This document shows, piece after piece, positions 1 through 60,009 of a stretch of 64,000 nucleotides of DNA; positions within the stretch are counted from its first letter, which is position 1, and each line of letters starts with the position of its first letter. A program made the position numbers and the translations under genes. The DNA lies in assembly GCF_052425735.1 (NCBI RefSeq), contig NC_135769.1:17980001-18044000 (forward strand), given 5' to 3'. The notes under the pieces are model-generated. The model saw nothing but the letters and a program-made list of their open reading frames with translations, was not told the DNA's origin and searched no databases. This DNA comes from Oculina patagonica. Its lineage: Eukaryota.

Positions 1-504
1 GCTGTTCTTGGAATAATTCACGGCGCTACAGAAGTCATAGAACGAAGCACCATGGTTGTTATTGATCACATTTGCCATGTTATTTGGAAAAGAAAATCAG
101 CTCCTTGGGGAAGTTTTCGTACTCCTCGCCGCGAGAGACTAATGGCTGATATCGCTATCATGAGCATGTTGTTTGAATCAACTGCTATAGTGTCTGTTAA
201 CGGATTTTTGTACTTGCACCAATTTATTTACTTACAAAACGATTCCCCTTTAAAGCTATTGCAGTCCTTTGCCATTCATACTTCAGTTTCTCTGGTGATC
301 GAATGGTTCTTCACCAGCGTTTCTCTAGCGATCGAGACTGTCATGGCTGTTTGGCGAAAAAGATGGAAAAGACACATTTTAGTGGCAATCGTAACTGCAG
401 TGTCAATAGCGTTGTGGGCTAGCACAAATCTTTTAGAAATTGTAAAAGAGCGCTTTGACGAGTTTTCAAATCAGCCTTGTAAAATGCCGTTTACTTCAAT
501 TTGA
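1..504 (+). CDS. 3' part of an uncharacterised multi-pass membrane protein family member (copy A), truncated by the window start; carries an in-frame 6-aa deletion (RYQNMA)
   Basis: The frame from base 1 reads AVLGIIHGATEVIERSTMVVIDHI...QPCKMPFTSI*, colinear with the C-terminus of the intact copies. It has AIETVMAV where the others have AIETRYQNMAVMAV. Confidence 0.75.
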   Translation, partial: AVLGIIHGATEVIERSTMVVIDHICHVIWKRKSAPWGSFRTPRRERLMADIAIMSMLFESTAIVSVNGFLYLHQFIYLQNDSPLKLLQSFAIHTSVSLVIEWFFTSVSLAIETVMAVWRKRWKRHILVAIVTAVSIALWASTNLLEIVKERFDEFSNQPCKMPFTSI

Positions 505-752
505 GACTGTAAAGTTTGAGGTGTGATACATCCGCCTTCCCTTTTATTAAACAGTTTGTTTTAAACCAACCAAAAAAAAGGTTTTCAAACAATGCAAAAA
601 TAATATTAATGTTTTAATTGATAAACTGCATGTAAGCTATAAGGTGTAATCCAGAGCAATAAAGAAGAATTGCAAGACAGTTGAAGATGTTTTCTTTCCG
701 GGGGATACTTCCGCTAGTGAGCTATACGGGGAGGCTCCAACCGAAAGGGGTA

Positions 753-1351
753 TAGGCTCTTACCGATAGTGCTCGTATAAAAGCATTAAATGCTTAAAAA
801 AGCAGTGCTTATTTTTTGCAACAAAGTGCTAAAATAATACTGATTTTTTTAAAAAGTGCTCGTGGGTTACATAAAAATGCTCATTTTTTTCCGTTTTTTT
901 TAAACATAGAATATTACATTTTTCAGATTTTCAGTTACATTTTTCAGCAACAAAATGTAACGATCAATGTTTGATGGCAGAGTACGCTCTCGAGCTATCT
1001 CTGCCTTGGATAGCTGACTTCCATTGTTCCTCGATAACAACGTGGATGACGCCATCTTAAAATGAGTGTGATGGACTGGGTTTCTAGGAGGCAACCGCTG
1101 ACCTATCAAACCTATTTCCCAGGCCTCCTCGGCTCCTTTGACTAAAATGATGGCAAAATCCATCTGGGAGGCTTTGGAATCCATAACTTAAGTCAGATTG
1201 TGCTTTTTAACACAAAATTATACAAATAATCAGTCGAAAATCCAAAATAATGCTAGCAGTGCTTTTTGGGATAAAATGTAAAAAAAAAAAAAATGCTCTC
1301 GAAGCCAAATAATGTCAAAAAAAAAGTGCTAGCACTATCGGTAAGAGCCTA
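753..1351. mobile_element. hAT-type non-autonomous element (MITE)
   Basis: TIR TAGGCTCTTACCGATAGTGCT...AGCACTATCGGTAAGAGCCTA with a perfect 8-bp TSD AAGGGGTA (745-752, 1352-1359). Confidence 0.85.
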
Positions 1352-1401
1352 AAGGGGTACCTTGTTCAGACTGGAGCTTCACAATAGTATGGGGTCTCTC
1401 G

Positions 1402-1423
1402 AGTAGTAGTAGTAGTAGTAGTA
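1402..1423 (+). repeat. (GTA)n microsatellite
   Basis: About 7 AGT units. Confidence 0.9.
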
Positions 1424-1826
1424 TAGGAAGGGGCTTCAGAAACTGCCAAGTAGTTTAACCCGGGTCGTCGGTTTACCAAGCGGGAGCCATCCCCACTTGG
1501 CCACCGACGACCGGTAGAAATTTTGGATAGAAATCCTAACCCTATTATAAAGGCTAACCGCAAGCGATCTAACTTGTCATCACTTGTTTCCACTTAGTCT
1601 GAAGCAATGCTTCGCAGTGATTTCCGTAGTTAAAGGGTCGTCAAAGGTTTTCAGATGAGACGTGACTCAAGTGAAAAGTTTAGAAAAGTGAAGCAAGGTG
1701 CTATTTTCTATACAAGGTATAGGGCAATAATGGTATATCTAAATGGGCAAGTATAAAACTTTGCTGGATTAACCCCTCCCGCACTCCCTTTCCGAGCTTT
1801 GTGTAAAAGATTCCGAGCAGCATTAA

Positions 1827-2392
1827 CCCATAACATGCTAAGCCCGAATTATTCCGGGATTTGGAGGAATGGCCATTCTGCCACTTATGACGTCACCAAT
1901 TTACACGTCAGCAGATTTTTGTGATTTGCATCTTATAGAGCTTGGATAGATCTTTCCACAGGACTGTCCATCTTCAATATTGACTGCATTCCGACAGAGC
2001 TAATCGAAAAAAACGCGATCAGTTTTTGGCGTAAAATTGGTGCTAAAACAGGCCAAAATACCCGTACTTGATCATGATCTCCTTTCCAGGGTTTTCCATT
2101 GATTCAGATCAAAAATTTTCATGCCAGTAGAAGAAGTGCACAGAGTAAAAGATAGAGAGAATGAGAAAGCAGAGAAAAACGAAAAGGAAAGGAGCAAGGT
2201 AAAAAAATCGGAACGGTTCAGCAAAAAAAAATATATATTGTACATTTTTACATGGAAATTACATCAAAATCTTCCTTCATTGTCAGAAAGTGCATTTTTA
2301 GCAAATTAAAAGAACTTTTGGACCGTGGAGCCAAGAAAATCGATTAACGGTTAAAAAACGCGTTTTTTGAACTAATTTCAGCATATTAAGGG
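1827..2392. mobile_element. piggyBac-like non-autonomous element
   Basis: TTAA|CCCATAACATGCT ... AGCATATTAAGGG|TTAA: CCC/GGG ends and a TTAA TSD. Confidence 0.65.
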
Positions 2393-2467
2393 TTAAATTT
2401 TACCGGCGATTTTTATCGCACGCTCAACTTGCTTTCAGTTCATCTCCTGTGATACTGTGATGATGTA

Positions 2468-2644
2468 CAGTCAACACTCTCTTAACGGACAACTCTATAG
2501 GACGGACACCTGGTGATGGTCCCGCCCCTGTCGTTTGTCAGTCATTTTACTGTTACCAAACTCCCTATAAGACGGAAACCTCTCTAATACAGACAGTGGG
2601 AGACGGTCCCGACGGTGTCCGTCTTATATAGAGAGAGTTGACTG
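2468..2644. mobile_element. Tc1/mariner (pogo-like) MITE
   Basis: TA|CAGTCAACACTCTC ... GAGAGAGTTGACTG|TA. Confidence 0.75.
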
Positions 2645-3529
2645 TAATCTCAATATAACACAGGTACGGTAAATCAAATTTACCATTACAATTAGAAAAC
2701 ACGTTTGTCGGGTTCATTTCAAAAGTATCTTGTTCGGCCTGCTGTGGTAAATTGCTTTAATAAAATAAAATAAATCCACGATAGCAAAATGCAACTGCCT
2801 CACTTATTGAATACTTTACCGCTAAATTTCTGCTCTTGTCTAGCTTGAATGCCATATAGAGTGGAGCCCTGTAGTAGTCCCGAAAGTATCGTCAGTATAA
2901 TACTGTGAATAAATAATTCAAACCTCTGTTTAGCGGCCACCTTTAATAAGCGATCTTTATTTCACATAAAGATCCTTATGTTAGCGATAATTTTTTCGCC
3001 ATATAAAATACGGACCTAAATATTTGATATTTCATAGTACATGTGACCAACACACTAAAAACCGATAGGCGTCAGCTTTATCGTCTATTTTGCCCTAATT
3101 TGTCAGGTTTTTGTTTCGTGTATTATTGATAAATCGATATTTTGCTTCGAGTTTCGAAGAGTTTCGAAACTATTCAGAGTTTGGTCTAGGAAGTAGAAAA
3201 ATTTGTGACAACTGTATTCCACTCTTCGGTAAGAAACTAAATGAAGGAGAAATTATCGTAAATGCTACTCAATAAAATTCTAATCTCTATACACATTGTT
3301 CTCTATTTGCTAAAAAAATGTTCTAAATGAACGGCTGAAAGTCGCAGCGTCGCGTATTTTTCAGCAGAGTCTATCTGACCATATCAATTCAAACAAAAAC
3401 TCTACATGTAATAGTCAAGAAAGGTAATAATTATATTGAGGATCGACTACATCTAATAACTGAGACCAATCAAAAGCAGGGACGGGAAATTGATAAATTG
3501 TGATGAAACCCCATGGCCATCTAGATCCC

Positions 3530-5152
3530 TTACCTAAATGGCATTTCGCAAGGTTGGTTCAAGGATTCGTTAAAACGCCCATGAACAATTATTAGAAGGA
3601 ATGTACTAGTCCATAACGATACTAACGCCGCGGTTACAATTGCCACTGAAATGTGTCTTTTCCATCTTCTTCGCCAAACAGCCATGACAGCCATATTCTG
3701 GTAGCGAGTCTCGATCGCTAGAGATACGCTGGTGAAAAACCACTCAATCACCAGCTGAACTGAAGTTGTGATGGCAAAAGCTTGTAGTAACTTTAAAAAT
3801 GAATCGTTTTGTAAGTAAATAAATTGATATAAGTACAAAAAGCCGTTAACAGACACTATAGCAGTTGACTCGAACAACATGCTCATGATAGCGATATCAG
3901 CCATAAGTCTCTCACGGCGAGGAGTACGAAAACTTCCCCAAGGAGCTGATGTTCTTTTCCAGATCAGATGACAAATGTGGTCAATGACAACCATGGTGCT
4001 TCTTTCTAAGACTTCTGTAGCGCCGTGAATTATTCCAAGAATAACGATCGATTGTAAACTATCAAGATCTGCCTGTAAAACTCGAAACATAACCGCTGCT
4101 GTGCAATACAATGGCGCTAACAAGACATACGAATATCCCGGATGGGTAATGTTCCATAACCGCTGAACACATATTCGCGAGATGACTTTGAGCACGACTC
4201 CAATGAGAGGAGCGAAGAGTGCGATTACCAGGCGCATTTTGCCTTCCTTGCTTTGTTTGTTATACGCTGGGTAAATTATTTCAGCCACAGGAATGGCAAG
4301 AACTGCAACGGCGAAGGCAGGAACTTTTATTTTGAAGAAAAACTTCACCTGCCGTCTCATCGACAGTCGCTTGCAAAAGTGTTTTGTTATAAGATACACT
4401 TGGCAACATGTACTAAAAACGCTATTAACGTTAAGTGGAATTTTTTGCAATGTAGTAAGTTTGGAATGAGATATTCCTAGGGCTTGAAGAATCACTCGAT
4501 AAAGTGCATCTAAAACATATCCAAGAGAAAAAACTAGCATCAGTTTTCTTTTCACCCCCATTAACTGATATGGACGGAAAAGAAATAGCATAACCACGAA
4601 CGTCGAAGTGTGTAAAAAAGCAACGCAGATCATATCAGAGATAGATCTCAACCATTGCACTTTTACTGGAATGAACTCCTTTGGGTGGAATTGGCAGTTG
4701 TTTATAGTCTTATAACATAGATAGGAGATCAGCATGTATACTGAACCTATGATGGTAGCGGTTAGTAGTGAAATCAATGCTCCAATGTTCATTGATTTAC
4801 AAACTGTACGGAGGGCGGATGGTCTGAGTCGCTTCCAAGCCATTGCTTTATCTTCATCTTGCTGATCTCCCTGTGTTTCTTCGTTTACTTCTGTTGAGAA
4901 GGCATTTATAACTTGTATACTAAGATTGTTAGCCACAGGATAGTCCAGGTTTGTGATTTCTCTGTAGCTGTATTCTTGATAAATAAGCTCATCGACAGGA
5001 AGATAATTCCATTCTCGACCTGTGCTTTGTAGAGGATCGTAGCCAAAAGACTCTGCCGTGAATTCAGGTTCTTCTGGGTTTAAATGCTCTGTCACGCCTC
5101 GTGTAAAACTGAACACAATATGACCAACGACTTCTATCAGTGTACTGCTCAT
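3530..5152 (-). CDS. Uncharacterised intronless ~11-TM membrane protein, copy B (540 aa, divergent TM2-TM5 subtype)
   Basis: Uninterrupted 540-aa ORF, highly similar to 5 other intact ORFs in the window, with many hydrophobic segments. Confidence 0.9.
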   Translation of the reverse strand: MSSTLIEVVGHIVFSFTRGVTEHLNPEEPEFTAESFGYDPLQSTGREWNYLPVDELIYQEYSYREITNLDYPVANNLSIQVINAFSTEVNEETQGDQQDEDKAMAWKRLRPSALRTVCKSMNIGALISLLTATIIGSVYMLISYLCYKTINNCQFHPKEFIPVKVQWLRSISDMICVAFLHTSTFVVMLFLFRPYQLMGVKRKLMLVFSLGYVLDALYRVILQALGISHSKLTTLQKIPLNVNSVFSTCCQVYLITKHFCKRLSMRRQVKFFFKIKVPAFAVAVLAIPVAEIIYPAYNKQSKEGKMRLVIALFAPLIGVVLKVISRICVQRLWNITHPGYSYVLLAPLYCTAAVMFRVLQADLDSLQSIVILGIIHGATEVLERSTMVVIDHICHLIWKRTSAPWGSFRTPRRERLMADIAIMSMLFESTAIVSVNGFLYLYQFIYLQNDSFLKLLQAFAITTSVQLVIEWFFTSVSLAIETRYQNMAVMAVWRRRWKRHISVAIVTAALVSLWTSTFLLIIVHGRFNESLNQPCEMPFR

Positions 5153-5774
5153 CTTTGCTGCTTGGAGAACTAAAAAAGGCTTATATCCAACAAATCCGTG
5201 ATTGTTTTAAGTTACGTTTCCTTGATTGGTAAAGCCTGGAACTGTTAACTCCACGATAATGATCAGCAGCTCAGTGATAGCTAAGAATTTGAACTTCGTG
5301 TTTTTTGGCATTTTCTGCAGTACAAGCGCCTTTTTATATGTTTTTCACACGGAAATGTAGATTTCTTCGTTCGAACGAACATTGTAACCTCTTTTTCGGG
5401 AACATTTTAAAATAGAAAAATTCGCACTGAAACGAATTCCTTGCTCGACTGGTTAAGGGCAAGTCCCGAATATCTTATGAAAACTTTTGCTCTTTAATTT
5501 TCAACGGATCATCTCTTGTCTTTTCGTATACGGAGGCAAACTGATGATAAAACATACTAGCTGAGCAATAAAAATTCGCTTTCGAAAGCTATGCCACCTA
5601 GATTTTGAGTAAATAACTTTTGGTCACTTCTGCTCACTTTGGATCCACTTGGGGGTTACTTCGATAAGGTCCGGAACAAGCGACTCTTGGCTGAAATTCT
5701 TCTAACAATCTTCGGTTTCTCTATTCAGAAATTTCACCGATTTGTTTTCAGATTTATAACTGCTTAGTTAGTTC

Positions 5775-7150
5775 AAATTCTCTCGAACCTTTGTTGTTAT
5801 AGTTAGTACAGGAGAGAGATTCAACGAAAATAAGTCACGCCAGTGATAAGTGGAATCAGGTGATGATGTATAACCTACTGAATACTAATTATCTTATTGC
5901 TTTCGAAACATTGTTGTCGAAGTTTGTAGAAGGGAGTTTAATCACGCCAGTGATATAATAATGATAATAAAACCTTTATTTAAGTGTCAACTGAAATAGC
6001 AGTATATGACAACCGCTTAATGGGGACACTATAAAAGCTAAAATTCTAAAACATACTACAAATAAGGATTAGTTAAATCAGGCGATTAGCTATCTGATCG
6101 CTTTCGAAACTTTGTTGTGGAAGTTAGCAGAGGTTCAACGGAGTTAAATCACGCCAGTAATAAATTGAATCAGGTGATAATGTATGCTTTCCTGAACACT
6201 AATTAGTAGATCGTTTGCTTTCGAAACTTTGTTGTGGAAGTTTAACGGAGTTAAGTCACGCCAGTAATAAATTGAATCAGGTGATAATGTATGACTTCTT
6301 GAATACTAATTATCTGATTGCTTTCGATACATTGTTGTGGAAGTTAGTGGAGGTTCAACGGAGCTAAGTCAGGCTAGTAATGAATTGAATCAGGTGATAA
6401 TGAATGCTTTCCTGAATACTAATTATCAGATTGTTTGCTTTCGAAACTTTGTTGTCGCAGTAAGTAGAGGTTCAACTAAATAAAATCACGCCAGTAATAA
6501 ATTGAATCAGGTGATAATGTATGACTTCCTGAATACTAATTAGTAGATTGTTTGCTTTCTAAACTTTGTTGTCGAAGTTAGTAGAAGGGATTCACCGGAG
6601 TTTAATCACGTCAGTAATATAATAATAAAAATAAAACGTTTATTTCAGTGTCAACTGAAATAGCAGCATATGACAACCGCTAAATGGGGACACTATAAAA
6701 ATTTTAAAAAATTCTAAAACATACTAAAAATGAATTAGTTATATCAGGTGTTTAAGTATGACTTCCCGAATACTAATTATCTGATTGTTTGCTTTCGAAA
6801 CTTTGTTGTCGCAGTAAGCAGAGGTTCAACTAAGTTAAATCACGTCAGTAATAAATCGAATCAGGTGATAATGTATCGATAATGTATGGCTTCCTGAATA
6901 CTTATTAGTAGATTGACTGCTTTCGAAACTTTGTTGTCGAAGTTTAGTAGTCAAGGTTCAATGGAGTCAAGTCACGCCAGTAGTGAATTGAATCAGATGA
7001 TTAGGTATGAGTTCCTGATCGAATACTAATTATCTGATTGCTTTCGAAACTTGCCGTTGAAGTTAGCAATAGAGTTTCAGCGGAAGTTAGCTAGATCAGC
7101 ATATCAGGTGATCCAGTGATCAGTATGACTTCTTGCCCGCAGTAATGAAG
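5775..7150 (+). repeat. ~110-125 bp tandem satellite (TTCGAAACTTTGTTGT...CACGCCAGTAATAAATTGAATCAGGTGAT...CTGAATACTAATT)
   Basis: About 10 diverged units. Two units carry the same ~100-bp insert (5957-6060, 6620-6730), which looks like a reverse retroelement tail. Confidence 0.85.
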
Positions 7151-7994
7151 GGACGACCCCATACCTAATGAACTTGCTTATCGATATTAGTTCCTGTTTA
7201 TTTATTAAGTTTCGTTTTTTTAATTTCCCGCAAACTAGTTATTGATAATTATCTAATTAGGTGAAGGGAATACAATGGGACAATAGACTTACCCAGAGCA
7301 CAATAAATGATATGTAGTTAGTTTTTAACCCATAGTAAAGTATATTTTCCTGCAGATGTTGCGGTCGTAAATTTAACCGTGTGTTTATTCTCACAGCTAA
7401 GAACACACACATATACGAAATATAATATATAATAGAGAAAGAAGAAAAAGGAAGCCAAAAATCACATCAGTAAACTATTAGTAAACTATTAGAAGTAGGC
7501 CACTCAGTTAGCACATGATTGAAATCTGTGCAAGCGTATGTACGCGTACTGGAGTAATCTTTATTCATCCATAAACTACTATAAATTCAAAACAATATAA
7601 AAAAGCTATTACATAAACGATTTAGGCAGTCTTAAAGGATTGCAACGAAGGAGAGTTCTTTATTTTATTGGGTAATCCATTCCATAATGTAGCCCCACCA
7701 CACCCACCTTGCACTACTTACGCCGTAATGAGTGGATTTAGAACACGTAGTGTACATTTCAGTTCGATATTCAGGACACCTTTGTGAACGCTGTGCATTA
7801 TGTCGGTTACGTGCTTTTGTCGTCTAGTTTGGAGGTCCTCCCAATTTAGCACGCAACAAAGGGTCTGAGACCATACATTGTACGAAGTTCTGGTGATGAC
7901 CATGGCAGCCCTATTTTGTAATCTCAGTAGCCAGAGTAGCTTATCAGACAGCGTTTTTCCGACATTCTCCCACACTGGGCTGCAGTAGTCAAAA

Positions 7995-8394
7995 TGGAAT
8001 CAGCTCCCTCCTTACATCAACACTTGCCCAACTTGAGAGACTTTCGAAAGAACTTGGAGACATTTGACTTTTTTAACTTAGTGTCATTATTGTATATCAT
8101 GTAGATTTTAGCGACATGTTTTTAGTATAATTATTATATTTTAAGATTTTAATCAAGCGTGTAAGAATAAGTTTTAGTGTGGGTGGGTTAAAGTATCTGT
8201 ACATTTTTATATTTTTACTCATAATTATCGTAATTTTCTTTGTAATATTTAATTAGTTATTACTTATATTAGTTCCCTTTGTTTTTATACTTTATTTCAA
8301 TTACTGTCATGCGCTTTATACATGAGCCTCTGACTTGGATAGGGAAGGCAACTTCATGCTGCGTTATTATTGTGATAAATTGATTGATTGATTG
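7995..8394 (+). mobile_element. LINE 3' tail inserted in the opposite orientation
   Basis: Starts WNQLPPYI and ends in ATAAATT(GATT)n. An inverted copy is at ~26592-27148. Confidence 0.5.
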
Positions 8395-8420
8395 GTACTG
8401 CACCAAAGACTTATATACTG

Positions 8421-8924
8421 TTATAAAATAACTCAGATACTACGCGCGCTCTGATTGGTCAAACTGGTCAAAAAAACCTATGTACTATTGTACCGGTAAA
8501 CTCCCGCTTCTCGACATGGCCGTACCGCTACGCTCGACCATGCAGAAGCTAGGACGAAGAATTAAAAACGTAGTTTAATGTCGTCTTTTGCTCTAGGTGA
8601 TGGTTAAAACAGAGGATATGGTTCTCGTAAATGATCATTATGATAATTTTAATACTGAGGATGGATCACATAATTAAATTTTCCCGCCCACCACAGTTGG
8701 AGCGAAGAAACTACATAAAAACGAAAACGCAGAGACTAACATAACCTTATGAGAAGGAACAGAATGAACAGGTCCGAAAAGCTTGTAAAAAATGAACAGG
8801 TCGAAAAGCTTGTAAATCACTCGCATAACGGTTCGTGATTTACAAGCTTTTCTCGTGTTCTCCCAACATCCTGCGTGGTTTTATTACGCCAGTAAATCCC
8901 TAGAAAGTGCGATCTATTGCTTAA
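8421..8924. mobile_element. Unclassified ~500-bp insertion with a subterminal hairpin
   Basis: Absent from the paralogous site at ~26560-26580. Contains the hairpin AAAAGCTTGTAAATCAC...GTGATTTACAAGCTTTT (8804-8851). Confidence 0.6.
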
Positions 8925-9229
8925 TGATTAAATTATCGTCACTAACGTAGGGTCACACCCTCTTAATCATTCCTATCCCGGAAGGCATTTTCTTACAGAT
9001 TTCTTCCATGTGATTTGACCAGCATTTAGCATTTGATACAATTTCCCAGTTGGGAACCACCAATCTGTACCATTGGCATCATGTTAGGATCTTAGTGACA
9101 TTGACCGTTTGTAATTATAATCAACATGTATTCACTTTTCATAGAAAATCTCTACAGTGCTTAGTCATCAGTATGTCATTTTTCGGGGCAGTTTACAAAG
9201 TGCAGTCCTTGAGATCCCTCGATGTAATG

Positions 9230-10849
9230 TTATGTAAACGGCATTTTACAAGGTTGATTTAAGGGCTCTTTAAATTGCTCGTGTACCATAACTAAAAGAT
9301 TTACGCTAGTCCATATGCCTACTGACACAACAGTTACAATTGCCACTACAATGTGTCTTTTCCATCGTCTTCGCCAAACAGCCATATTCTGATAGTGAGT
9401 CTCGATCGCAAGAGAGACGCTGGTGAAAAACCACTCAATCACAAGCTGAACTGAAGTTGTGATGGCGAAAGCAGACTGTAATAGCTTTAAAAGGGAATCG
9501 TTTTGTAAGTAAATAAATTGATATAAGTACAAAAAGCCGTTAACAGACACTATAGCAGTTGATTCCGACAACATGCTCAAGATAGCGATATAAGCCATTA
9601 GTCTCTCACGGCGAGGGGTACAAAAACCTCCCCAAGGAGCTGAAGTTCTTTTCCAAATCACGTGACAAATGTGATCAATAACAACCATGGTGCTTCGTTC
9701 TAAGACTTCTGTAGCGCCGTGAATTATTCCAAGAATAGCGATGGATTGCAAACTGTCAAGATCCGCCTGTAAAACTCGAAAAATGAAAGCTGAAGCACAA
9801 TACAGCGGTGCTAATAGGATATAGGAATATCCCGGATGAGTAATGTTCCATAACCGCTGGACACAAATTCGCGAGATGACTTTAAGCACGACTCCAATGA
9901 GAGGAGCGAAGATTGCAATTACCAGGCGCATTTTGCTTTCCTTACTTTGCTCGTTATACGCTGGGTAAATCCAAGCGGCCGCAGAAATGGCAAGAATTAT
10001 AACAAATAAGATAGGAATTGTCATTTCCAAGAACAAAGTCACCTTCAGTCTCCTTGTCCGTCCCATACGGAAGTGATTCGTTAGAAAATAGGCTTGCCAA
10101 CATATAGCCATTACAAATAAAGCGTTGAGGGGAATCTTTTGCAAACCAGAAAGCTTGGAATGAGATATTCCCAGGGCTTGTAGAGCGACACGATAACATG
10201 TGTCCAAGAAATATACAAGGCAAGCAGCCAGGACCAGTTTTCTTTTCATTCCCATTATCTGATAAGGACGAAATAGAAGTAAAGTACATGTGAAGAACCA
10301 AGTGTAAAGAAAAGCACAAGAGATCACATCAAAAATTGATCTCGTCCATTGCACGTTTTCTGGAATGGACTTCTTAGGGTGAAATTCACAGTTGGTTATA
10401 GTCTTAAAAGACAGGTTGGAGATCGTCATGAATATTGAACCTATGATGGTAGCAGTTAGTAGTGAAATCAAAGATCCAATGTACATTGATTTACAGACTG
10501 TACGGAGAGCGGATGGTCTGAGTCGCTTTCAAGCCATTGCTCTATCTTCATCTTGCTTGTCTTCCTGTGTTTCTTCGTTTTCCTCTGGCGAACACGCGTC
10601 TATAACCCTTATATCAAGACGGCTAGACGCTAAATAATCCCAGCTTGTGACTTCCCTGTGGCTGTATTCTTGATAAATAAGCTCATCAACAGGGAGATAA
10701 TTCCATTCTCGACCTGTGCTTTCCAATGGATTGTAGCCGAAAGACTCTGTCGTGTATTCAGGTTCTTCTGGGTTGTAGCGCTCTGCCACGCCTCGTGTAA
10801 AACTGAACACGATCGGACCAAACACCTCTAACAGTGTAATTCCACTCAT
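9230..10849 (-). pseudogene. Family copy C with an in-frame nonsense codon (Trp107 TGG->TGA)
   Basis: ORFs 10529-10849 and 9230-10486 are in the same frame and together cover the full protein. It also has a 3-aa deletion (MAV) and a 1-aa insertion. Confidence 0.85.
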
Positions 10850-12600: not shown

Positions 12601-14083
12601 GTGAGCAGTACAATGATAGAAGTCTTTAGTCATATCGTGTTCAGTTTTACACGAGGCGTGACAGAGCACTACAACCCAGAAAAACCTGAATTCACGGTGG
12701 AGTCTTTTGGCTACGATCCTCTACAAAGCACAGGTCGAGAATGGAATAACCATTCTGTTGATAAGCTTTTTTATCAAGAATACAGTGACAGAGAAGTCAC
12801 AAACCTGGACTATTATGTGGCTAACAATCTCAGTATACAAGTTATAAATGCCTTCTCAACAGAAGAAAACGAAGAAACACAGGAAGCAAGATGGAGACAG
12901 AGCAATGGCTTGGAAGCAGCTCAGACCATCCGCTCTCCGTACAGTTTGTAAATCAATGTACATTGCAGCTTTGATTTCACTACTCACTGCTACCATCATA
13001 GGTTCAGTATACATGCTGATCTCCTATCTATGTTATAAGACTATAAACAACTGCCAATTCCACCCAAAGGAGTCCATTCCAGTAAAAGTGCAATGGTTGA
13101 GATCTATCTCTGATATGATCTGCGTTGCCGATTTTGTTACACACTTCGACGTTCGTGGTTGTGCTTTTTCTTTTCCGTCCATATCAGTTAATGGGGGTAA
13201 AAAGAAAACTGATCGGTGCTAGTTTAGATGCACTTTATCGAGTGATTCTACAAACCCTAGGAATATCTCATTCCAAACTTACTACATTGCAAAAAATTTC
13301 ACTTTACGTTAGTAGCGTTTTTAGTAGATGTTGCCAAGTGTAGCTTGTAACGAAACAGTTTTGCATACGACAGTCGATAAGACGGCAGGTGAAGTTTTTC
13401 TTCAAAATGACAGTATCTGCCTTTTCTTTTCAATTCCTGTGGCCGAAATAATCTACCCAGCGTACAACAAACATAGTAAGGAAGGCAAAATGCGCCTGGT
13501 AATCGCACTCTTCGCTCCTCTCATTGGAGTCGTACTCAAAGTAATCTCGCGAATTTGTGTCCAGCGGTTATGGAACATTACCCATCCGGGATATTCGTAT
13601 GTCTTATTAGCGCCGTTGTATTGCACAGCAGTGGTTTTTTCCGTGTTTTACAAGCGGATCTTAATAGTTTACAATCCATCGCTATTCTTGGAATGATTCA
13701 TGGTGTCACAGAAGTCATAGAAAGAAGTGCTATGGTTGTGATCGATCACATTTGTCACGTGATGTGGAAAAAACAACAGCTCCTTGGGGAAGTTTTCGTA
13801 CTTGTCGCCTTGAGAGACTAATGGCTGATATCACTATCATGAGTACGTTGTTTATATCAACTGCTGTAGTATCTGTTAATGGTTTTTTGTACTTGTGTCA
13901 ATTTATTTACTTACAAAACGATTTCTTTTCAAAGTTACTACAAGCTTTTGCCATCACAACTTCAGTTCAGCTGGTGATTGAGTGGTTTTTTCACCAGCGT
14001 ATCTCTTGCGATCGAGACTCGCTACCAGAATATGGCTGTCATGGCTGTTTGGCGAAGAAGATGGAGAAGACACATTTCAGTGG
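12601..14083 (+). pseudogene. Family copy D: frameshifted inverted paralogue of copy B, running into the assembly gap
   Basis: The start codon is GTG. Successive frameshifted ORFs (12601, 12848, 13125, 13328, 13555, 13752, 13978) tile the copy-B protein, and there is also an internal TAG. Confidence 0.9.
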
Positions 14084-14583
14084 NNNNNNNNNNNNNNNNN
14101 NNNNNNNNNNNNNNNNNNNNNNNNNNNNNNNNNNNNNNNNNNNNNNNNNNNNNNNNNNNNNNNNNNNNNNNNNNNNNNNNNNNNNNNNNNNNNNNNNNNN
14201 NNNNNNNNNNNNNNNNNNNNNNNNNNNNNNNNNNNNNNNNNNNNNNNNNNNNNNNNNNNNNNNNNNNNNNNNNNNNNNNNNNNNNNNNNNNNNNNNNNNN
14301 NNNNNNNNNNNNNNNNNNNNNNNNNNNNNNNNNNNNNNNNNNNNNNNNNNNNNNNNNNNNNNNNNNNNNNNNNNNNNNNNNNNNNNNNNNNNNNNNNNNN
14401 NNNNNNNNNNNNNNNNNNNNNNNNNNNNNNNNNNNNNNNNNNNNNNNNNNNNNNNNNNNNNNNNNNNNNNNNNNNNNNNNNNNNNNNNNNNNNNNNNNNN
14501 NNNNNNNNNNNNNNNNNNNNNNNNNNNNNNNNNNNNNNNNNNNNNNNNNNNNNNNNNNNNNNNNNNNNNNNNNNNNNNNNNNN
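14084..14583. other. Assembly gap (500 N)
   Basis: Run of N. Confidence 1.
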
Positions 14584-14717
14584 GAGAGGTGGGGTTTAAA
14601 GATGATGGCCTCGATAGAGCTTTTACGGTAATTTGCATTTCTACCTCTTTATTCAGAATCAAGCAACATTATTACAACCAGAGACATTCCAAATATTTTT
14701 GAGATCTGCGTCTAATC

Positions 14718-19711: not shown

Positions 19712-19869
19712 TTGGTAGGCCACTTAGTCACAACATGACTAAAATCTGTCCAAGCGTATCGTGATGCAAGATTACTGTAGTACTAATCTTTATTTAACCA
19801 CGGTAATACAAATTCAGCAAAGGTTGCCTTTCAAATTATAGCTGTGACCTACAAAATAACATTAAAAAA

Positions 19870-20235: not shown

Positions 20236-20246
20236 TAGGTATGGAA

Positions 20247-20605: not shown

Positions 20606-20610
20606 TGGAA

Positions 20611-25518: not shown

Positions 25519-26289
25519 ATGACACTTCCGGTTGAAACTGTAATTTACCCACTGTATAACGAGCAAAGTAAGGAAGGGGAAATGCGCCTGGTAATTGCAC
25601 TCTTCGCTCCTCTCATTGGAGTCGTGCTAATAGTAATTTCGCGAATTTGTGTTCAGCGGTTATGGAACATTACTCATCCGGGATATTCCTATATCCTATT
25701 AGCACCACTGTATTGTGCTTCAGCTTTCATATTTCGAGTTTTACAAGCGGATCTTGACAGTTTGCAATCCATCGCTATTCTTGGAATAATTCACGGCGCT
25801 ACAGAAGTCATAGAACGAAGCACTATGGTTGTGATCGATCACATTTGTCATGTGATTTGGAAAAGAACATCAGCTCCTTGGGGAAGTTTTCGTACTCCTC
25901 GTCGTGAGAGACTAATGGCTGATATCGCCGTCTTGAGCATGTTGTCGGAATCAACTGCTATAGTGTCTGTTAACGGCTTTTTGTACCTTTTTCAATTTAT
26001 TTACTTACAAAACGATCCCCTTTTAAAGCTATTACAGTCTTTCGCCATCAAAACTTCAGTTCAGCTGGTGATTGAGTTGTTTTTCACCAGCGTGTCTCTT
26101 GCGATCGAGACTCACTATCAGAATATGGCTGTCATGGCTGTTTGGCGAAGAAGGTGGAAAAGACACATTGTAGTGTCAATTGTAACTGTTGTGTCAGTAG
26201 GCATATGGACTAGCGGAAATCTTTTAGTTATGGTACAAGAGCAATTTAAGGAGCCCTTAAATCAATCTTGTAAAATGCCGTTTACATAA
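25519..26289 (+). pseudogene. Family copy G: 5'-deleted copy encoding only the C-terminal half (256-aa open ORF)
   Basis: Family homology starts at ~25542 (IYPLYNEQ). The first codons (MTLPVET) derive from upstream flank sequence seen at 22812-22834 (minus strand) and 58224. Confidence 0.75.
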
Positions 26290-29819: not shown

Positions 29820-30275
29820 AAAATTACCCTGATACAATCACAAGAAAGGGATCTATCGGAGTCACAGTTTGGCTACAATCCTCTACAAAAGACAAGTCTA
29901 GAATGGTATAAGAGCAATTTTCGATTGAGTGTCGAAAGAAATCCAGACTGAATTGTTTAGTTTTTTTTCCACTTCGTTCTGTGATTGGTTTGAAAATTTC
30001 CCGCCCCAATACTCGACCAATCAGACGCAAAGCCATAACCAATCGCGACTTTGTTACGTGACGCGTTTTCCCGCGCTCGGCGCCGCTGACTTGTATTTGC
30101 TTCAGTTTGTCATTGGTTCATTGTTTGCTTAGTCATTGAAATTGCTTTGGTTTTAGTTTTACGACACTCACATGAAAACTGTTCTATCGTCCGGTTGATC
30201 AGCTTTTTTTATCAGAAACACAGCCACAAAGAACTGAACGCAAAAGCTTCTACTATCTAGCGTCTAAACGTCTCA
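29820..30275 (+). pseudogene. Highly decayed N-terminal relic of the membrane-protein family, split by a MITE
   Basis: TTTGGCTACAATCCTCTACAAA..GAATGGTA|MITE|TCGTCCGGTTGATCAGCTT..ATCAG..TATCTAGCGTCT matches FGYNPLQ..EWY.RPVD.L.YQ..YLAS. Confidence 0.6.
29910..30186. mobile_element. MITE with AGAGCA.TTTTC..TTGAGTGTCG TIRs
   Basis: AGAGCAATTTTCGATTGAGTGTCGAAA ... TTTACGACACTCACATGAAAACTGTTCT; it interrupts the gene relic. Confidence 0.7.
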
Positions 30276-31235: not shown

Positions 31236-32419
31236 TCATGTAGACGGCATTTTACAAACCTGATTTGGGGACTCTTTGAAGCGCCCATGTACAATTGCCC
31301 AAAGAGGTCCACTTCAATAGTGAGTACCGTGCTGGGTTTTTTGAGCATTACAACTCTCGAGACGTTTTCATCTTAAAATTTGCCATCTTCATTAGTTATT
31401 TTTGTTTCCTTAGAAGTCCATTTTTGGTTGGGTCAAATTAAAGGAAGGCGGATGTATCACAACTTAAGTTTCTCAAATATTGCAATTCCTTGGGTGTTTT
31501 TAACAAACCAATTATTTCACTCGCACTTGTTGGATGAGATAGTGTTCTGAAACAAGTTTCAGCAGTTCGAACTCGTCAACACTCTCGGACCCTACATTCA
31601 GATCATGGATCGAAACTTGATTTTTCGATTCTTTACTTCTAGATCTGTCCATCACGCCTCCGTTATGTAAAACTGAACTCAATGTTATACAAACAGCATC
31701 CATAGTATCCATATCTGACTTGATATATAAACTATTAAAAATGGTTGAAATCCAAGACCTAGCTAGAAACTGTATTAACTGTCTTTTTCTAGAAACTTTT
31801 TAAAAATTTTACCAACCTATGTTAAAACTCGGTTTAAAACCGTATCTCTGTCGGTTTTTTGGGAGGTCGAACAAGCTAATTTTTTTAGCCGCCAAACGCT
31901 TGCAACTTCCTTTGCTCCAAAATCATGTAAGCAGATTTCAGATTTTTTTTTTTCAGATTTAAGCATTTGTTTAGCGCTGAGATAATGAATTCTCAAACAG
32001 TATCAAACCTGTACAGATCGAATAATATTTTGAGTCCACGAAAAAAAAACATGTTTTCTTGTATACGGAGTTACGGCTAGCTTGGCTGGACATTAATGTT
32101 TTAGTGCTGTTCGATACACATTTTTACAAAATAGCAACAATCTATGTACCCTGGGTTCCAGAGGGTTTTTTTTTTACAATCTATGGGAAAATAACTTTAA
32201 AAGTGTAAAGTTGCCTTATTTCTTCTTTTTTTTCTTTATCAGTTGTGATAATTTACCATCTACGAAAGGGGTAGGGTTAGATGGAAAGGTGGGGGACTTA
32301 TAAAAAAAGTTGAGCTTTAATACGGTGGAAGGGGGGCTTTTCGAAGGGAGCGCTTAATAGAGCATTTACTTAAATTATAATTTGTGTTTCTACCTCTTCG
32401 TTACGCGTTTATAAGCCTT

Positions 32420-37199: not shown

Positions 37200-37455
37200 C
37201 TCGTCAATCCTCTAGGCACGTGCATTCATGGATCGAAACTCGGTTCACGCTTCTAGATCTGTCCATAATGCCTCCGTTGTATAAACAAGAACATGATAAC
37301 ATGATGGTAATACCATTCTCGACCTGTGCTTTGTAGAGGATCGTAACCAAAAGACTCTGACGCTCTGTCGTGAATTCAGGCTCTTCTGGGTTGTACTGCT
37401 CCGTCAGGCCTCGTGTTAAATTGAACACGATACGACCAAACACAGCAACTCATTG
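37200..37455 (-). pseudogene. Short N-terminal relic of the family, separated from its upstream region by a transposon
   Basis: Reads FGRIVFNLTRGLTEQYNPEEPEFTTE, then an 8-nt insertion frameshift and loss of homology. Confidence 0.75.
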
Positions 37456-44870: not shown

Positions 44871-44880
44871 GGTATGGAAG

Positions 44881-45163
44881 GTAAAGTCTGCTTTCGAGCC
44901 TAGTGGCCAATCAGACCGGAGCTCATCCCAGTTTCAGTAACATGAAGCGACTAGGAGTATTTCTACTTCCTTCTGGGTGGATGCTAGTCCATCGCAGAGT
45001 TACCCCTTAGCATTAACGACACCGGTAATTAGTCATATATCTGCGTGGAGAGAGGCTCGTGAATTATCTTGCCCAAGAACCCAACAAAATGGCCCCCTCC
45101 AGTGCTAGAACCCGGACAGCTCGATCCGGAGACCAGCCCACTAACCTTTAGGCCACCGCGCCT
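44881..45163 (-). mobile_element. tRNA-derived SINE (duplicate of 20611-20886)
   Basis: Same sequence and same insertion point. Confidence 0.7.
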
Positions 45164-45303
45164 CCCACAATTTAACCCCACACTGAGCTACAGTAGTCAA
45201 AATGGTACTGCACCAAAAACTTATATACTATCAGTGATTAAATTGTCGACACTGACGTAGGTCTCTCACCCTCGTAATCAGTCTTTGAGATCTCCATGTA
45301 ATC

Positions 45304-46929: not shown

Positions 46930-49218
46930 TGTTGCTGGAGACCCGAATAAAATGCTTACATTCCACCAAGTTTGTTAGTTTACGTTGATGGTTTTAGGTT
47001 TCCTCGAGGAAATAAACCTTACTCTTATCTCCACGATGATCAGCAGCTAGAATTTAAGAGCTTGTCCTGCGTTCTCGATCTGTGGCCAGTGTTGTGTGGC
47101 AATTGCTGCCGTAAAAGCGTCTTTTTATTTGTTCTTTCACACGGAAGTCTAGATGTGTTTGGTAGGGAACTTTGAATTATTTATTTCCTTTCGTTTCTAA
47201 CCAAATACAAAGTTTAAAAAATAGATCGAGGTAAAATATTGTTATCATTCAGGAACTGAATAGCTTCTTGTTATTCGCCTCACTAAACCCAAGCTGAGCT
47301 CATGACTGAACCCTGACTGCTGCGTACCCACTCAAATGGCCAGAAAATAATTTTATTTGCAGAGCTGACGAGATGGCTTCTAGGGCAATGTAGAACGAAT
47401 AAACACTAATTACACAAGCAAATCATTTCAGAAGAACATTCTGGAGTATATTTCAGTAGTTCGAATCATACGGTTCGGAAGCAAACATTGCGTCATGGAA
47501 GGAAAGAGACCTGTAGAGCTAGAAAGCTATTGAGAAACCTCCTGTCGAGTTCGTTAATTAATTTTTAACGCTTCCTTTAAAACAATTAGAGAAAATTCCA
47601 GAGAATTGGTTGATTATACATTCAATACTTGAACTTGAAGTGAGCAATTTATTTATAAGTACTTGCCATTTCTGGTTTGGTTTGACTCGTTTTATTTGCG
47701 ATGTTAAAGGCAAATTCATGTTCTAACAGTCTTTCACTGCCGCGAAATATAAAAAAATAAGAATTTTCTGTCTACAATATAAATATCAAGGCTTGGATTT
47801 TTAATGACTGTTCGCAGCTTCTCTTTCTTGAACGCAAAAAACGCGAGTGAAACATGCAGCGAACGCAAAGCACGAGGAGGTCTCCCGTTTTACGCTGGCG
47901 TCCAGCCCTCGCAGTTCAGTTTTCCTGTGTTCAAAGATCGAAAAAAACATGCGAGAAAATAAAGGGCTTTGAACAGTCTAAGACGTTCATAGTTCGTAAG
48001 CAACTTGTTAAAAGGCGGTAACAGACGAAGAAACATGTTGCATAGACATGTCGCGGCGATATGTAGCAGGGGCCAAAACAACATGTACACACGCATGAAA
48101 ATGTAGCGAGGAGATGTCGCAGCGACACGTAACTCATGGCACCGTGGGATGTGTCGCTGCAACATGCCCTTCTAAGTGGTACGCGTGATCGAGACTTCCA
48201 ATTAACAAAACAACATTTTTATTTTTTGGTCAATCGTTTACAGCTTTCCGGTTGCTGTCAGTGCTATTTCCTAATTTATAAAACTTCAGGATAAATTGTG
48301 CTCTCTGATTGGCTGTTACTCAGTTGGGGTTTTGGGTTTGAGTGATCATGATCACTCAAACCCAAAACCCAAATTGTGCCTGTGATTGGCTGTTACTCAG
48401 TTGGGGTTTTGGGTTTGAGTGATCATGATCGGGATTCGACTGTACCTATATATTCAAATCACAAGAAATACTTTTTTTTGCCGACATACTGACGACATGG
48501 CGCCGGGAACAACCTCGAATAAATATTCATCCGCGAGCATTTCGTTTAAAAGCGTTCTCGCAGTAGTTTGAACTTCGCTGTATTTTTAGTGAATAGATAA
48601 ACTCGTTAATCCGCTAGGCACGTGCATTCATGGATCGAAACTTGTTTTTTCTTTCTGGACTGATCTGTCTATAACGCCTCCGTTGTATAAACAAGAACAT
48701 ACATCAACAGGATGGTAATACCATTCTCGATCTGTGCTTTGTAGAGGATCGTAACCAAAAGACTCTGACGCTCTGTCGTGAATTCACGTTCTTCTGGGTT
48801 GCAGTGCTCCGTCAGTCCTCGTGTTAAATTAAATAGGATACGACCAAACACCTCTATCGGTGCATTGCTGCTTGGATCTCGTGGCCTGTACAAATGTTTA
48901 TGGCTAGCGTACTTTTATAGTATTAAGTTTCCTCGGAAACCCAAACTGTTATTTCGACGATGATGATCTGCTGCTAGAAATTTAGATCTTCTTGTGTTGC
49001 TTGGCGTTTTCTGCTGTAAATGAGCTCTTTTCTTCTTTTTCACGCGGAAGTCTAGTTCTTTCTGCTCACACCCATTAAAAGATAAGTTTCCGCTCGTTTC
49101 TAACCGCTTTTTCCAAATTACCGCATTTTCTCGATTAAACGCCGGGTCTGCCAGGTGGAGTTGAAAATAGGCCCCTCAGGTATTATTTATTTGAGGTATA
49201 ATAAGCTGTAGGTATGTT
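46930..49218. repeat. Segmental duplication of the upstream region of copy H (35263-39706 minus insertions) and partly copy E (16344-17470)
   Basis: Long colinear nucleotide matches. Confidence 0.85.
48600..48865 (-). pseudogene. Short N-terminal relic (duplicate of the 37.2-37.45 kb relic, without the P-like insertion)
   Basis: Reads IEVFGRILFNLTRGLTEHCNPEEREFTTE with the same frameshifting insertion. Confidence 0.75.
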
Positions 49219-52545: not shown

Positions 52546-53274
52546 ATGAGTAAGCAAAGTCTTGGGGGAAAAGATCAGCTACGAAACCAAGGCCTGGCGG
52601 ACGCAGAAAATAAAATCAAAGAAGCGTGCGAGTTCTTTCAACAAGAAGCAGCAAGACTTCGGCAGGAGCAGGAAGCCTTCGACCCCATGTCGAAGAAACT
52701 GGATCATGTTCACTTTTCCTCGACCGTAAATCTCAATGTTGGTGGCTATCACTCCACAACAAGCGTTCAAACGCTGACCAAAGATCCAAACTCGATGCTG
52801 GCGGCCATGTTTACCGGACGATTTGAGATGAAACCTTCTGAAGATGGCTCGTTCTTTATCGATCGAGATGGAACTCACTTCCGGTTTATACTCAATTTTC
52901 TCCGCACTGGAAAGTTAACTTTGCCAGAAGGAGCAACATTTCTCAAGGAACTTGAAGAAGAAGCTAAGTTTTATCAGATCCAAGGAATCATTGACGAGTT
53001 GAGGCCTGCTGAACCGAGTACAATTCAAGCAAGTAAACCTATCGAGGCATTTGAAGTGTCGGTGATCCTGACAATGATGAGCATCGAAGTGTGTTGAAAT
53101 GTTGGCTTCCACGTGAGGACGGCAAATGGCGTCTTCTGTTCCGAGCTACTCGTGATGGCTTTGCAGCTGCAACCTTTCACTCCATATGTGATAACAAAGG
53201 ACCCACGGTCACCATTGTGAAAAGTGGAAACAATATTTTTGGAGGCTTCACAGAGGTGTCGTGGACGAGCCCGG
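52546..53274 (+). pseudogene. BTB/POZ (KCTD/T1-type) plus TLDc-domain protein, first exon, frameshifted
   Basis: VNLNVGG..TTSVQTLTKDPNSMLAAMF..FFIDRDGTHFRFILNFLRTG is a KCTD BTB motif. After a 1-nt loss at ~53073, WRLLFRATRDGF....FH..CDNKGPTVTIVK.....FGGFT..SW is the start of a TLDc domain. A splice donor GTAAGT follows at 53275. Confidence 0.8.
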
Positions 53275-54307: not shown

Positions 54308-54390
54308 TTTGATCAGTGAGAAGAAACTTGATCAAACTTTGCCCCGGAACCAAAACCAAACTCAGCGATCGAATGATAAAACTGTAACAA

Positions 54391-57411: not shown

Positions 57412-57418
57412 TAAATGA

Positions 57419-57912
57419 GGGTCTGTTTACATAATTCCGGAATGACTTTCATCCCGGAACAAAACTCCTTCCGGAATGAAGTTCGTTCTGCCTTCGCAGT
57501 GATAAAGTCGACCGACTCAACCAAAGGCGTTTTCACGTGCGTGGTTTTCGCGAGATCAAAACAAGGATATTGTCCTTATGTATGGCCATTTCTGCAGTTT
57601 TAACGAGCAATTTGACCGTAGGTCTACTTATTTGAGATAAATAGGAAATACTATTACGCTTTTTCGCTCTGAGTTCAATCTGTGGCCTCAGTTTCATCTC
57701 GGAACGAAATTCGTTTTGTGTTTTTATGATACCGGAATGAGTTGTCTTTCCAGAACGAAAGTTTCATCCCGGAAAATGAACTCATGCTTTCATGACTTGT
57801 GCTGAAGCGAAACTTCGTCTCGATATCATGTAAAAAGAGACAGAGAAATATATTGGGATAGAATGAACTCGTTCCGGAATGAAAGTCATTCCGGAATCAT
57901 GTAAACAGGCCT
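57419..57912. mobile_element. Second PIF/Harbinger-type MITE (CCGGAATGA repeats)
   Basis: GGGTCTGTTTACATAATTCCGGAATGACTTTCAT ... ATGAAAGTCATTCCGGAATCATGTAAACAGGCCT. Confidence 0.75.
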
Positions 57913-58058
57913 TTAGAAAGGTTGACGCTTAATAGTTGTAACGGAAATTAATCAATTAACCGTGAAACATCAACCTTAAAACCCCATAAAGATGTATTTT
58001 TTGGGGGAAATAACATAGTCGGAACACATTCTTGGCCATCGAATCGCGAAACAATACG

Positions 58059-58093
<35 letters not shown>

Positions 58094-58125
58094 ATCAATC
58101 AATCAATCAATCAATTAATCAATCA
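58059..58125 (+). repeat. (TCAA)n microsatellite
   Basis: About 16 units. Confidence 0.9.
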
Positions 58126-58394
58126 TTTGCTCTTTAATGTGGCCCTTTTACGTAAGTTCTTACTCGCTCATATTCGCAGAAACTGAAACCACTTAAATAT
58201 TTTCATTCCCAATAGATAAGATAATGACACCTCCGATCGAAACTGAAAACGGGGAAGCCCCTCATGTGAAGTGGATTTTATACATCAAAACGACACAGGA
58301 ATATTCAGTTTATAATCTGAAGATTGCGTTCAAGTTACAGTTGTTTCCTTGCGTACCGTCAGTAACTTTTAAACCATTGCGTCTTCGATTAACA

Positions 58395-60009
58395 ATGAGT
58401 AGCAGTACATTGATAGAGGTGTTTGGTCATATCGTGTTCAGTTTTACACGAGGCGTGACAGAGCACTACAACCCAGAAGAACCTGAATTCACGGCAGAGT
58501 CTTTTGGCTACGATCCTCTACAAAGCACAGGTCGAGAATGGTATTATCTTCCTGTTGATGAGCTTATTTATCAAGAATACAGCGATAGAGAAGTCACAAA
58601 CTTGGACTACCTTGCGTCTAACAGGCTTGATGTAAGGGTTATAAACGCGTGTTCGCCAGAGGAAAACGAAGAAACACACGATGATAAACAAGATGAAGAT
58701 ATGGCAATGGCCTGGAAGCGACTCAGACCATCCGCTCTCCGTACAGTTTGTAAATCAATGTACATTGGAGCTTTAATTTCACTACTAACTGCTACCATCA
58801 TAGGTTCAGTATACATGCTGATCATCTATCTGTGTTTAAAAACTATAAGCAACTGTGAATTTTACCCAAAATCCATTCCAGAAAATGTGCAGTGGATGAG
58901 ATCAATTTCTAATGTCATCTCATGTGCTTTTATGTACTCTTGTTTCTTTACATGTACGTTACTTCTATTTCGCCCTTATCAGCTACTGGGAGTGAAAAGA
59001 AAACTGGTCCTGGCTGCTAGTCTTGTTTACTTCTTGGATACATGTTATCGTATTGCTCTGCAATTTCTGGGAATATCTTATTCTAAGATTTCTATTTACC
59101 AAAAACTCCCACTCAATGCTTTAGCTATAATGAGTATATTTTGGCAAGCCTATTTTCTAACGAACCACTTCCGTATGGGACGGACAAGGAGACAGAAGGT
59201 GACTTTGTTCTTGCAATTCACAGTTCCGTTTTGTTCTATTATAATTCTTGGCGTTTCTGCGGCCGCTATTATTTACCCAGTGTATAACGAACAAAGCAAG
59301 GAGAGCAAAATGCGCCTGGTAATCGCAGTCTTCGCTCCTCTTATGTGAGTCGTACTTAAAGTAATCTCGCGAATTTGTGTGCAGCGGTTATGGAATATTA
59401 CGCATCCGGGATATTCGTATGTCTTATTAGCGCCGTTGTATTGTGCCTCAGCGGTTATGTTTCGAGTTTTACAAGCGGATCTTGACGGTTTGCCATACAT
59501 CGCTATTCTTGGAATAATTCACGGCGTTACAGAAGTCATAGAACGAAGCGCCATGGTTGTGATCGATCACATTTGTCACGTGATTTGGAAAAGAAAATCG
59601 GCTCCTTGGGGGAGTTTTCGTACTCCTCGCCGTGAGAGACTAATGGCTGATATCGCTATCATGAGCATGTTGTCGGAATCAACTGCTATAGTGTCTGTTA
59701 ACGGATTTTTGTACTTGTATCAATTTATTTACTTACAAAACGAATCCCTCCTTAAGTTACTGCAGTCTTTCGCTATTCATACTTCAGTTCAGCTGGTGAT
59801 TGAGTGGTTTTTCACCAGCGTCATCATAGACTCGCTATCAGAATATGGCTGTCATGGCTGTTTGGCGAAGAAGATGGAAGAGACATATTTTAGTGGCAAT
59901 TGTACTTGTTGTGTCAGTAGGCATATGGACAAGTGGAAACCTTTTGGCAATGGTACACAAACGTTTTGAAAAGCCCTTAAATCAACATTGTAAAATGCCG
60001 TTTACTTAA
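58395..60009 (+). pseudogene. Family copy K: full length, with an in-frame nonsense codon (GGA->TGA, 59346-59348) and a frameshift at ~59822
   Basis: ORFs 58224-59348 and 59379-59969 tile the protein. The normal C-terminus (..NQHCKMPFT*) continues in another frame to TAA at 60007-60009. Confidence 0.9.

Follow-up and report, generated by a model that had tools for sequence, protein, structure and literature searches.

The 64,000-nucleotide window analysed here (NCBI RefSeq assembly GCF_052425735.1, contig NC_135769.1, positions 17,980,001 to 18,044,000 of the forward strand) comes from the coral Oculina patagonica, has a G+C content of about 39%, and contains a cluster of related genes for a predicted membrane protein. 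An earlier interpretation made from the letters of the window only, called the sequence-only reading below, had described an expanded cluster of an intronless family of about 540 amino acids (aa) in both orientations, and this description is confirmed by tblastn and translation. The inventory was obtained by searching the window with one intact gene, copy F, by using tblastn, and then translating the loci that were found (Table 1). It comprises 13 firm family-derived loci, or 15 if two marginal matches are included. The firm loci are six intact single-exon genes (540-541 aa), one copy cut by the edge of the window, three disabled copies, one half-gene and two relics. The earlier count of at least 15 loci therefore stands for the intact, edge-cut, disabled and half-gene classes, whereas its four or five relics are reduced to two firm and two marginal ones. 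Five of the intact copies are identical, residue for residue and over the whole length, to proteins in a public collection, so existing gene calls agree on a coding sequence of one exon.

Table 1. Family-derived loci and the assembly gap, in order along the window.
Feature	Position	Strand	Remarks
Edge-cut copy	1..504	+	Family residues 371-541 plus stop; open frame; 83% identity to copy F (tblastn)
Copy B, intact gene, 540 aa	3530..5152	-	Identical to collection protein P0022; in another subclade than the remaining copies (tree)
Copy C, disabled, full length	9230..10849	-	Single in-frame stop, at codon 107
Copy D, disabled/decayed	12604..14082	+	Several frameshifts and stops; three tblastn pieces in different frames, 44-77% identity; abuts the gap
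Assembly gap (N)	14084..14583		Separates copies D and E, whose 3' ends face each other
Copy E, intact gene, 541 aa	14718..16343	-	Found by tblastn and translation
Intact gene, 541 aa	21029..22654	-	Identical to collection protein P0004
Half-gene, open 256-aa frame	25519..26289	+	Corresponds to family residues 286-541 (helices 6-11)
Marginal relic	29841..29906	+	Residues 28-49, E 0.1; may be chance
Marginal relic	31239..31313	-	Residues 517-541, E 0.006
Copy G, intact gene, 541 aa	33637..35262	-	Identical to collection protein P0010
N-terminal relic, firm	37298..37449	-	Residues 7-54, E ~1e-14; ~2 kb upstream of copy G; co-duplicated with the copy F unit
Copy H, intact gene, 541 aa	41414..43039	-	Identical to collection protein P0006; RNA-run contigs over the coding part
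Copy F, intact gene, 541 aa	45304..46929	-	Identical to collection protein P0001; RNA-run contigs over the coding part; tblastn query and source of structure model 1
N-terminal relic, firm	48703..48872	-	Residues 2-55, E ~1e-14; ~1.8 kb upstream of copy F
Copy I, disabled	58395..60006	+	Stop near codon 341; frame change near residue 492

The window is part of a large tandem array that has grown by repeated local duplication in both orientations. Self-comparison of the window reveals duplication units of about 3-3.6 kb that are shared among copies E, G and F and that include the upstream relics. Positions 45281-48333, for example, match 33610-36618 at 88% identity and 14698-17524 at 86%. A segment carrying the upstream relic (48412-48851, compared with 37011-37443) continues the unit match, and the relics were therefore duplicated together with the genes. 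Apart from short open reading frames (ORFs) nested within family genes, the units contain no further ORF of at least 110 aa. In a tree of 121 relatives, six of the window copies fall within one well-supported clade of 13 sequences, which also includes two further annotated O. patagonica proteins encoded on the same contig; copy B is placed in another subclade.

The full-length copies are old paralogues under purifying selection. In all pairs of such copies, the synonymous divergence (dS) is 0.22-0.55, and the ratio of nonsynonymous to synonymous divergence (dN/dS) is 0.27-0.36. Because dS is at least 0.22 in every pair, the copies are not collapsed haplotypes, an artefact that the sequence-only reading had named among its refuting conditions. 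The same reading had proposed birth-and-death evolution, and this is borne out: purifying selection, together with the coexistence of intact, disabled, truncated and relic copies, amounts to a birth-and-death pattern. Constraint is uneven along the protein. The ratio of nonsynonymous to synonymous differences (pN/pS) is 0.02 in helix 9, and the least constrained stretches of 20 codons, which lie in helices 2, 4 and 11, have values of 0.71-0.83. At this resolution of 20 codons, no window reaches a dN/dS above 1 (maximum pN/pS 0.83). Carriage of the genes as cargo of a mobile element was also considered, and was rejected on the grounds that the copies are clustered locally and form a local clade, that they are under purifying selection, that the duplication units lack any further ORF of the size given above, and that relatives in an anemone are also in tandem.

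The family is transcribed. Contigs assembled from four RNA-type runs were placed on positions 41300-47200 at a likeness of at least 97%, and they lie over the coding sequence of copies H and F, whereas depth in the spacer at 43073-44650 is at or near zero. In the metatranscriptome run, depth is in the hundreds to thousands over the coding parts and about 11 in the spacer. The sequence-only reading had held that a lack of transcripts from all intact copies would count against its proposal. The RNA contigs show transcription at the level of the family; short contigs placed at this likeness do not tell which copy is their source. The contigs depart from the genome match at the ATG or a few bases before it, at 46930 for copy F and at 43046 for copy H, and their unmatched ends have no counterpart in the window. 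A possible splice acceptor lies 5 bases before the ATG, only in some copies. The divergence could reflect either an intron in the 5' untranslated region (UTR) or reads derived from paralogues.

The exception to the RNA depth profile is a spike at about 44850-45160. This position coincides with a repeat on the minus strand that resembles a tRNA-derived short interspersed nuclear element (SINE) and that lies 150-450 bases downstream of the copy F stop codon. The SINE-like repeat is the deepest-covered part of 41300-47200 in all four RNA runs. ARAGORN calls no tRNA at the repeat, and scanning the window for Rfam families and tRNAs gave no hits. Related repeats flank other parts of the array, near 7643-7979, 19767-20249 and 27153-27463.

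Relatives of the window proteins are numerous in anthozoans. A word-indexed search returned more than 1,218 proteins at E<=1e-3, many of which are O. patagonica entries, and an exhaustive search returned 601 representatives at the 50% clustering level. The named members, from O. patagonica, Montipora, Stylophora and Actinia tenebrosa, are all called 'uncharacterized protein'. Near the query, the ESM Atlas has about 56 cnidarian clusters with at least 50 members each, and in one sister cnidarian cluster, 14% of members carry the Pfam domain PF28488 (SPCC553_12c). In A. tenebrosa, five single-exon copies are arranged in tandem on the same strand (WAHB01000163.1, 1-15533), adjoining a gene for an MFS_1 transporter. 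The tandem organization and the intronless coding sequence are thus older than the split between corals and anemones.

The family also extends beyond animals. A homologue of 642 aa is present in the unicellular holozoan Pigoraptor chileana and has 25% identity over 404 residues, with an E-value of 3e-37 in pairwise comparison and 5e-31 library-wide; it shares all of the invariant residues listed below. In word-indexed searches, two queries, namely the Pigoraptor sequence and a profile built from 16 distant members, recovered nothing beyond the Pigoraptor protein. Because of this homologue, and because of probable relatives in fold that occur across eukaryotes, the family is regarded as old, eukaryote-wide and hugely amplified in anthozoans, and not as a cnidarian invention. 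These two observations also argue against transfer from microbes, and no sign of recent horizontal transfer was found, although prokaryotic genomes and viral contigs were not scanned directly. Separately, a eukaryotic contig of ENA assembly ERZ25073755 (47% G+C) contains two divergent members, of 601 and 473 aa, side by side at 937-11422. Their identity to the coral protein is about 25%, and a second copy of the pair lies about 7 kb away.

The sequence-only reading had offered the repertoire as undescribed. This is not so at the level of gene catalogues, in which NCBI already lists the proteins as 'uncharacterized protein LOC...' in several anthozoans. A search of the literature found no paper on the family, and nothing for the NCBI identifiers of the Stylophora and Actinia members or for PF28488. 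The text of the supplements to the Stylophora cell atlas contains no family identifiers, and papers on tandem duplication and 'dark genes' in corals, including PMC10236652 and PMC12314368, do not describe the family.

Structure prediction suggests a polytopic membrane protein. A model of copy F, made with AlphaFold2 from an alignment of 28 sequences, has a predicted local distance difference test (pLDDT) score of 77, a predicted template-modelling (pTM) score of 0.81, and 11 long helices. A second model, of the Pigoraptor membrane domain, was built as a check and scores higher (pLDDT 88, pTM 0.88); the two share part of their alignment and so are not fully independent. The N-terminal ~110 residues probably form an acidic, disordered cytosolic tail, in which a D/E-x-x-I-Y-x-E-F/Y motif is conserved. 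Segments rich in Lys and Arg precede helix 1 and occur in loops 2-3, 4-5, 8-9 and 10-11, which by the positive-inside rule predicts a cytosolic N-terminus and a C-terminus outside. The protein is accordingly drawn, as a prediction, with 11 membrane crossings in an N-in/C-out arrangement. Given this arrangement, C153, which follows helix 1, and C535, which belongs to the C-terminal tail, are two invariant cysteines that would both face outward and could form a disulfide on the outer side of the membrane.

Conservation is concentrated in the second half of the membrane domain and on its inner face. Among 28 sequences with identities down to 23%, the invariant residues are W106, C153, R326, H337, R357, Q360, D391, R412, R415, D419, E428, N486, W493 and C535, and the near-invariant ones include D215, K322, E383 (E or D), R384 and E470 (E or D). 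The charged and polar ones from K322 onward (K322, R326, H337, R357, Q360, E383, R384, D391, R412, R415, D419, E428, E470 and N486) are read as a network in helices 6-10 and the cytosolic loops. Among 112 close relatives, helices 6-10 and the inner loops are likewise the most conserved parts, and variation is greatest in the outer loops and the tail, in helices 2, 4 and 5, and in the outward half of helix 11. Entropy in the same 112 sequences is 1.14 in the outer loops versus 0.64 in the inner loops, and variability peaks at residues 270-292.

In a comparison with Swiss-Prot models by using Foldseek, the only convincing reviewed match among those listed is the Schizosaccharomyces pombe protein O74949 (SPCC553.12c), with E 6e-5, probability 1.00, template-modelling (TM) scores of 0.49/0.51 and a root-mean-square deviation (rmsd) of 13.7 A. 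The alignment spans residues 48-523 against 37-516. In the AlphaFold cluster library, Foldseek finds uncharacterized proteins at TM 0.44-0.66 (some of them at 0.57-0.66, and up to 0.60/0.66), which, from their accession series, we take to come from protists, algae, oomycetes and fungi. SPCC553.12c is like the coral family in being polytopic and of similar length. It is unlike the family in that no direct sequence match is shown; in addition, arrays are described here for the corals, in which they are large, and not for the yeast gene. A Pfam scan of family members gave no match to PF28488, though it is uncertain whether the scanned copy of Pfam includes that model. Two fission-yeast screens list SPCC553.12c as 'transmembrane transporter (predicted)' (PMC5990653, PMC7218141).

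The explanation that best accounts for these observations as a whole is an old family, expanded in corals, whose members serve as membrane conduits, and we favour it by a modest degree. Its descriptive part, namely the array, the range of the family and the selection acting on it, is held with high confidence. The conduit mechanism on its own is tentative, and we would put it slightly below even. According to this mechanism, each protein would be a channel for ions, a transporter of solutes or a groove of the scramblase type. Permeation, ion binding or gating would take place in a core made up of the conserved buried charges, and the variable shell that faces outward would adjust the stimulus or cargo of each paralogue.

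Several observations weigh against the conduit. Copies F and B match no Pfam family at E<=1, a scan of 28 diverse members yields none at E<=0.1, and PDB sequences give no match, even with a profile search. Foldseek comparison of both models with solved structures yields nothing significant (best E 0.03, TM at most 0.26). An internal repeat, which is common in transporters, was not detected by comparing one half with the other as profiles (probability <1%). The topology is itself a prediction from the positive-inside rule and predicted helices, the 'transporter (predicted)' label of the yeast protein is likewise a prediction, and buried charges occur in membrane enzymes and receptors too. The RNA data, moreover, speak for the family and not for a particular copy. 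The lack of a Pfam match also means that no domain of a G protein-coupled receptor (GPCR), MFS protein or channel is detected, which agrees with the sequence-only reading, where no motif of these kinds had been recognized. Its description of the family as unassigned is upheld as well: no characterized family accounts for the proteins.

A more specific version of the conduit reading would make the family a far-diverged branch of the TMEM16/OSCA-TMEM63/TMC channel-scramblase superfamily, acting as a gated ion channel, a lipid scramblase, or both. Among solved structures, this is the sole group whose alignment with both models extends across the full membrane domain, and no other natural membrane proteins rank above it, a resemblance that is reproducible and specific in rank. 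Its members share with the coral family a polytopic build of 10-11 helices, the late ones bearing conserved acidic residues; those on helices 8-10 of the coral protein recall a cation site, and an Anoctamin cluster turns up in the Atlas shape search. However, the alignments are weak (rmsd 5-7 A, with ~55% of residues aligned), they come from models that have part of an alignment in common, and the Atlas TM-score to the Anoctamin cluster is 0.32/0.24. TMEM16, OSCA and TMC proteins are not in the best 30 matches listed from Swiss-Prot models or from AlphaFold clusters, nor in the best 38 from the PDB (Foldseek), and Pfam models for Anoctamin (PF04547), RSN1_7TM (PF02714) and TMC (PF07810) have no match at E<=1. 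TMEM16 and TMC proteins have 10 helices with both ends cytosolic, and OSCA proteins have 11 helices with the N-terminus outside, so the 11 helices and N-in/C-out arrangement predicted for the coral family fit neither plan. The relationship is possible, and on the doubtful side. A membrane-embedded enzyme, or a factor for biogenesis or quality control in the endoplasmic reticulum (ER), such as an EMP65/TAPT1-like or acyltransferase-like protein, would fit the invariant His, Asp, Glu, Asn and Arg residues close to the cytosolic face. The S. pombe 'ER membrane protein 65' is found by Foldseek with probability 0.99, though at TM 0.26/0.23, and MBOAT and acyltransferase clusters top the Atlas shape search at TM ~0.25. 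All of these structural scores are at noise level, and such a role does not obviously explain dozens of diverging paralogues, their variable outer surfaces, or the conserved pair of cysteines on the outer or lumenal side, which makes it very unlikely.

It is also conceivable, by analogy, that the array encodes a variable receptor repertoire for chemosensation or for recognition of symbionts or microbes, in which the outer shell would bind cues and the inner core would signal, possibly as a ligand-gated channel. Repertoires of chemoreceptors and immune receptors, such as insect odorant and gustatory receptors (OR/GRs), vertebrate ORs and coral-amplified receptor orthogroups, resemble the family in their intronless genes, tandem copies in both orientations, pseudogenes and relics, and in combining a variable outward-facing part with a conserved core. 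Here, high copy number accompanies this organization, and the variation lies on outward loops and helices 2, 4, 5 and 11, the cytosolic face being conserved. Gene families in corals are amplified chiefly by tandem duplication, and receptor families amplified in this way are typical of these animals (PMC10236652, PMC12314368). In contrast to these repertoires, the coral family has an unrelated fold that lacks a seven-transmembrane (7TM) match, and its 20-codon windows show no diversifying selection. It is also older than animals, as the Pigoraptor homologue and probable fold relatives in yeast indicate, and a pre-animal origin suggests a basic cellular role that preceded the expansion. The case for receptors is an analogy of genome organization, and we consider it unlikely. 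In the earlier proposal of a sensory, symbiont-recognition or transport repertoire, the sensory and recognition parts rest on that analogy, and transport agrees somewhat better with the conserved buried charges.

Rhodopsin-type GPCRs are implied by the automatic names of some relatives. Two proteins in the AlphaFold clusters are called 'G-protein coupled receptors family 1 profile domain-containing protein' and one is called 'Transmembrane protein 145', and there are seven helices in the C-terminal part of the model. Nonetheless, the models have 11 helices and not a seven-helix bundle, the Pfam searches of copies F and B and of the 28 members contain no 7tm or GpcrRhopsn4 match at their respective thresholds, and the translations contain neither DRY nor NPxxY. 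The GPCR assignment is thus effectively refuted.

Stony-coral genomes are rich in tandemly amplified 'dark' genes, and this family is one of the larger cases that involve a membrane protein. Databases contain more than 1,000 relatives, the Atlas clusters number in the dozens and this chromosome alone has several arrays, yet the family is without an assigned domain or solved structure. With its pre-animal age, the probable fold relative in yeast, and channels and scramblases as its closest solved look-alikes, an otherwise anonymous expansion becomes open to experiment. Should the paralogues differ in the stimulus that opens them or in their cargo, the family would bear on coral sensing or the management of symbionts; if not, the family is a well-documented but ordinary lineage-specific expansion. 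More speculatively, an ancient eukaryotic conduit, either a divergent cousin of TMEM16/OSCA/TMC or a fold of its own, might have been multiplied into diversifying surface channels that are gated by ligands or other stimuli and serve chemosensation or recognition of symbionts or microbes. We regard this scenario as distinctly unlikely. If such a repertoire of gated channels exists, it would constitute a class of receptor-channels unrelated to GPCRs, ionotropic glutamate-type receptors or insect OR/GRs.

Copies D and E converge on the assembly gap, and each was read on its own side, with no frame or continuity inferred across the N residues. Copy D reaches family residue ~504, with its last base one before the gap, and the stop codon of copy E (14718-14720) lies 135 bases past it. 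In the interval 14584-14717, tblastn with copy F found no family coding sequence. Four listed 'ORFs' that span the gap are artefacts of translating N.

Two other open frames occur in or near the array. A frame of 183 aa at 52546-53097 (+), inside the array and between copies, matches the BTB_2 domain (potassium-channel-tetramerisation or KCTD-type) with E 8e-22. Just past the last family copy, a frame of 123 aa at 60667-61038 (+), overlapping 60498-60944 (-), matches the THAP zinc finger with E 7e-11, and could be a domesticated or transposon-derived gene. Tandem repeats are located at 63226-63999, 6256-6585 and 24476-24994. They include a 205-bp repeat (3.7 copies) that runs to the end of the window, a 117-bp repeat (2.9 copies), and microsatellite-like arrays with periods of 12/24 bp and 21/41 bp, which form a block just upstream of the half-gene.

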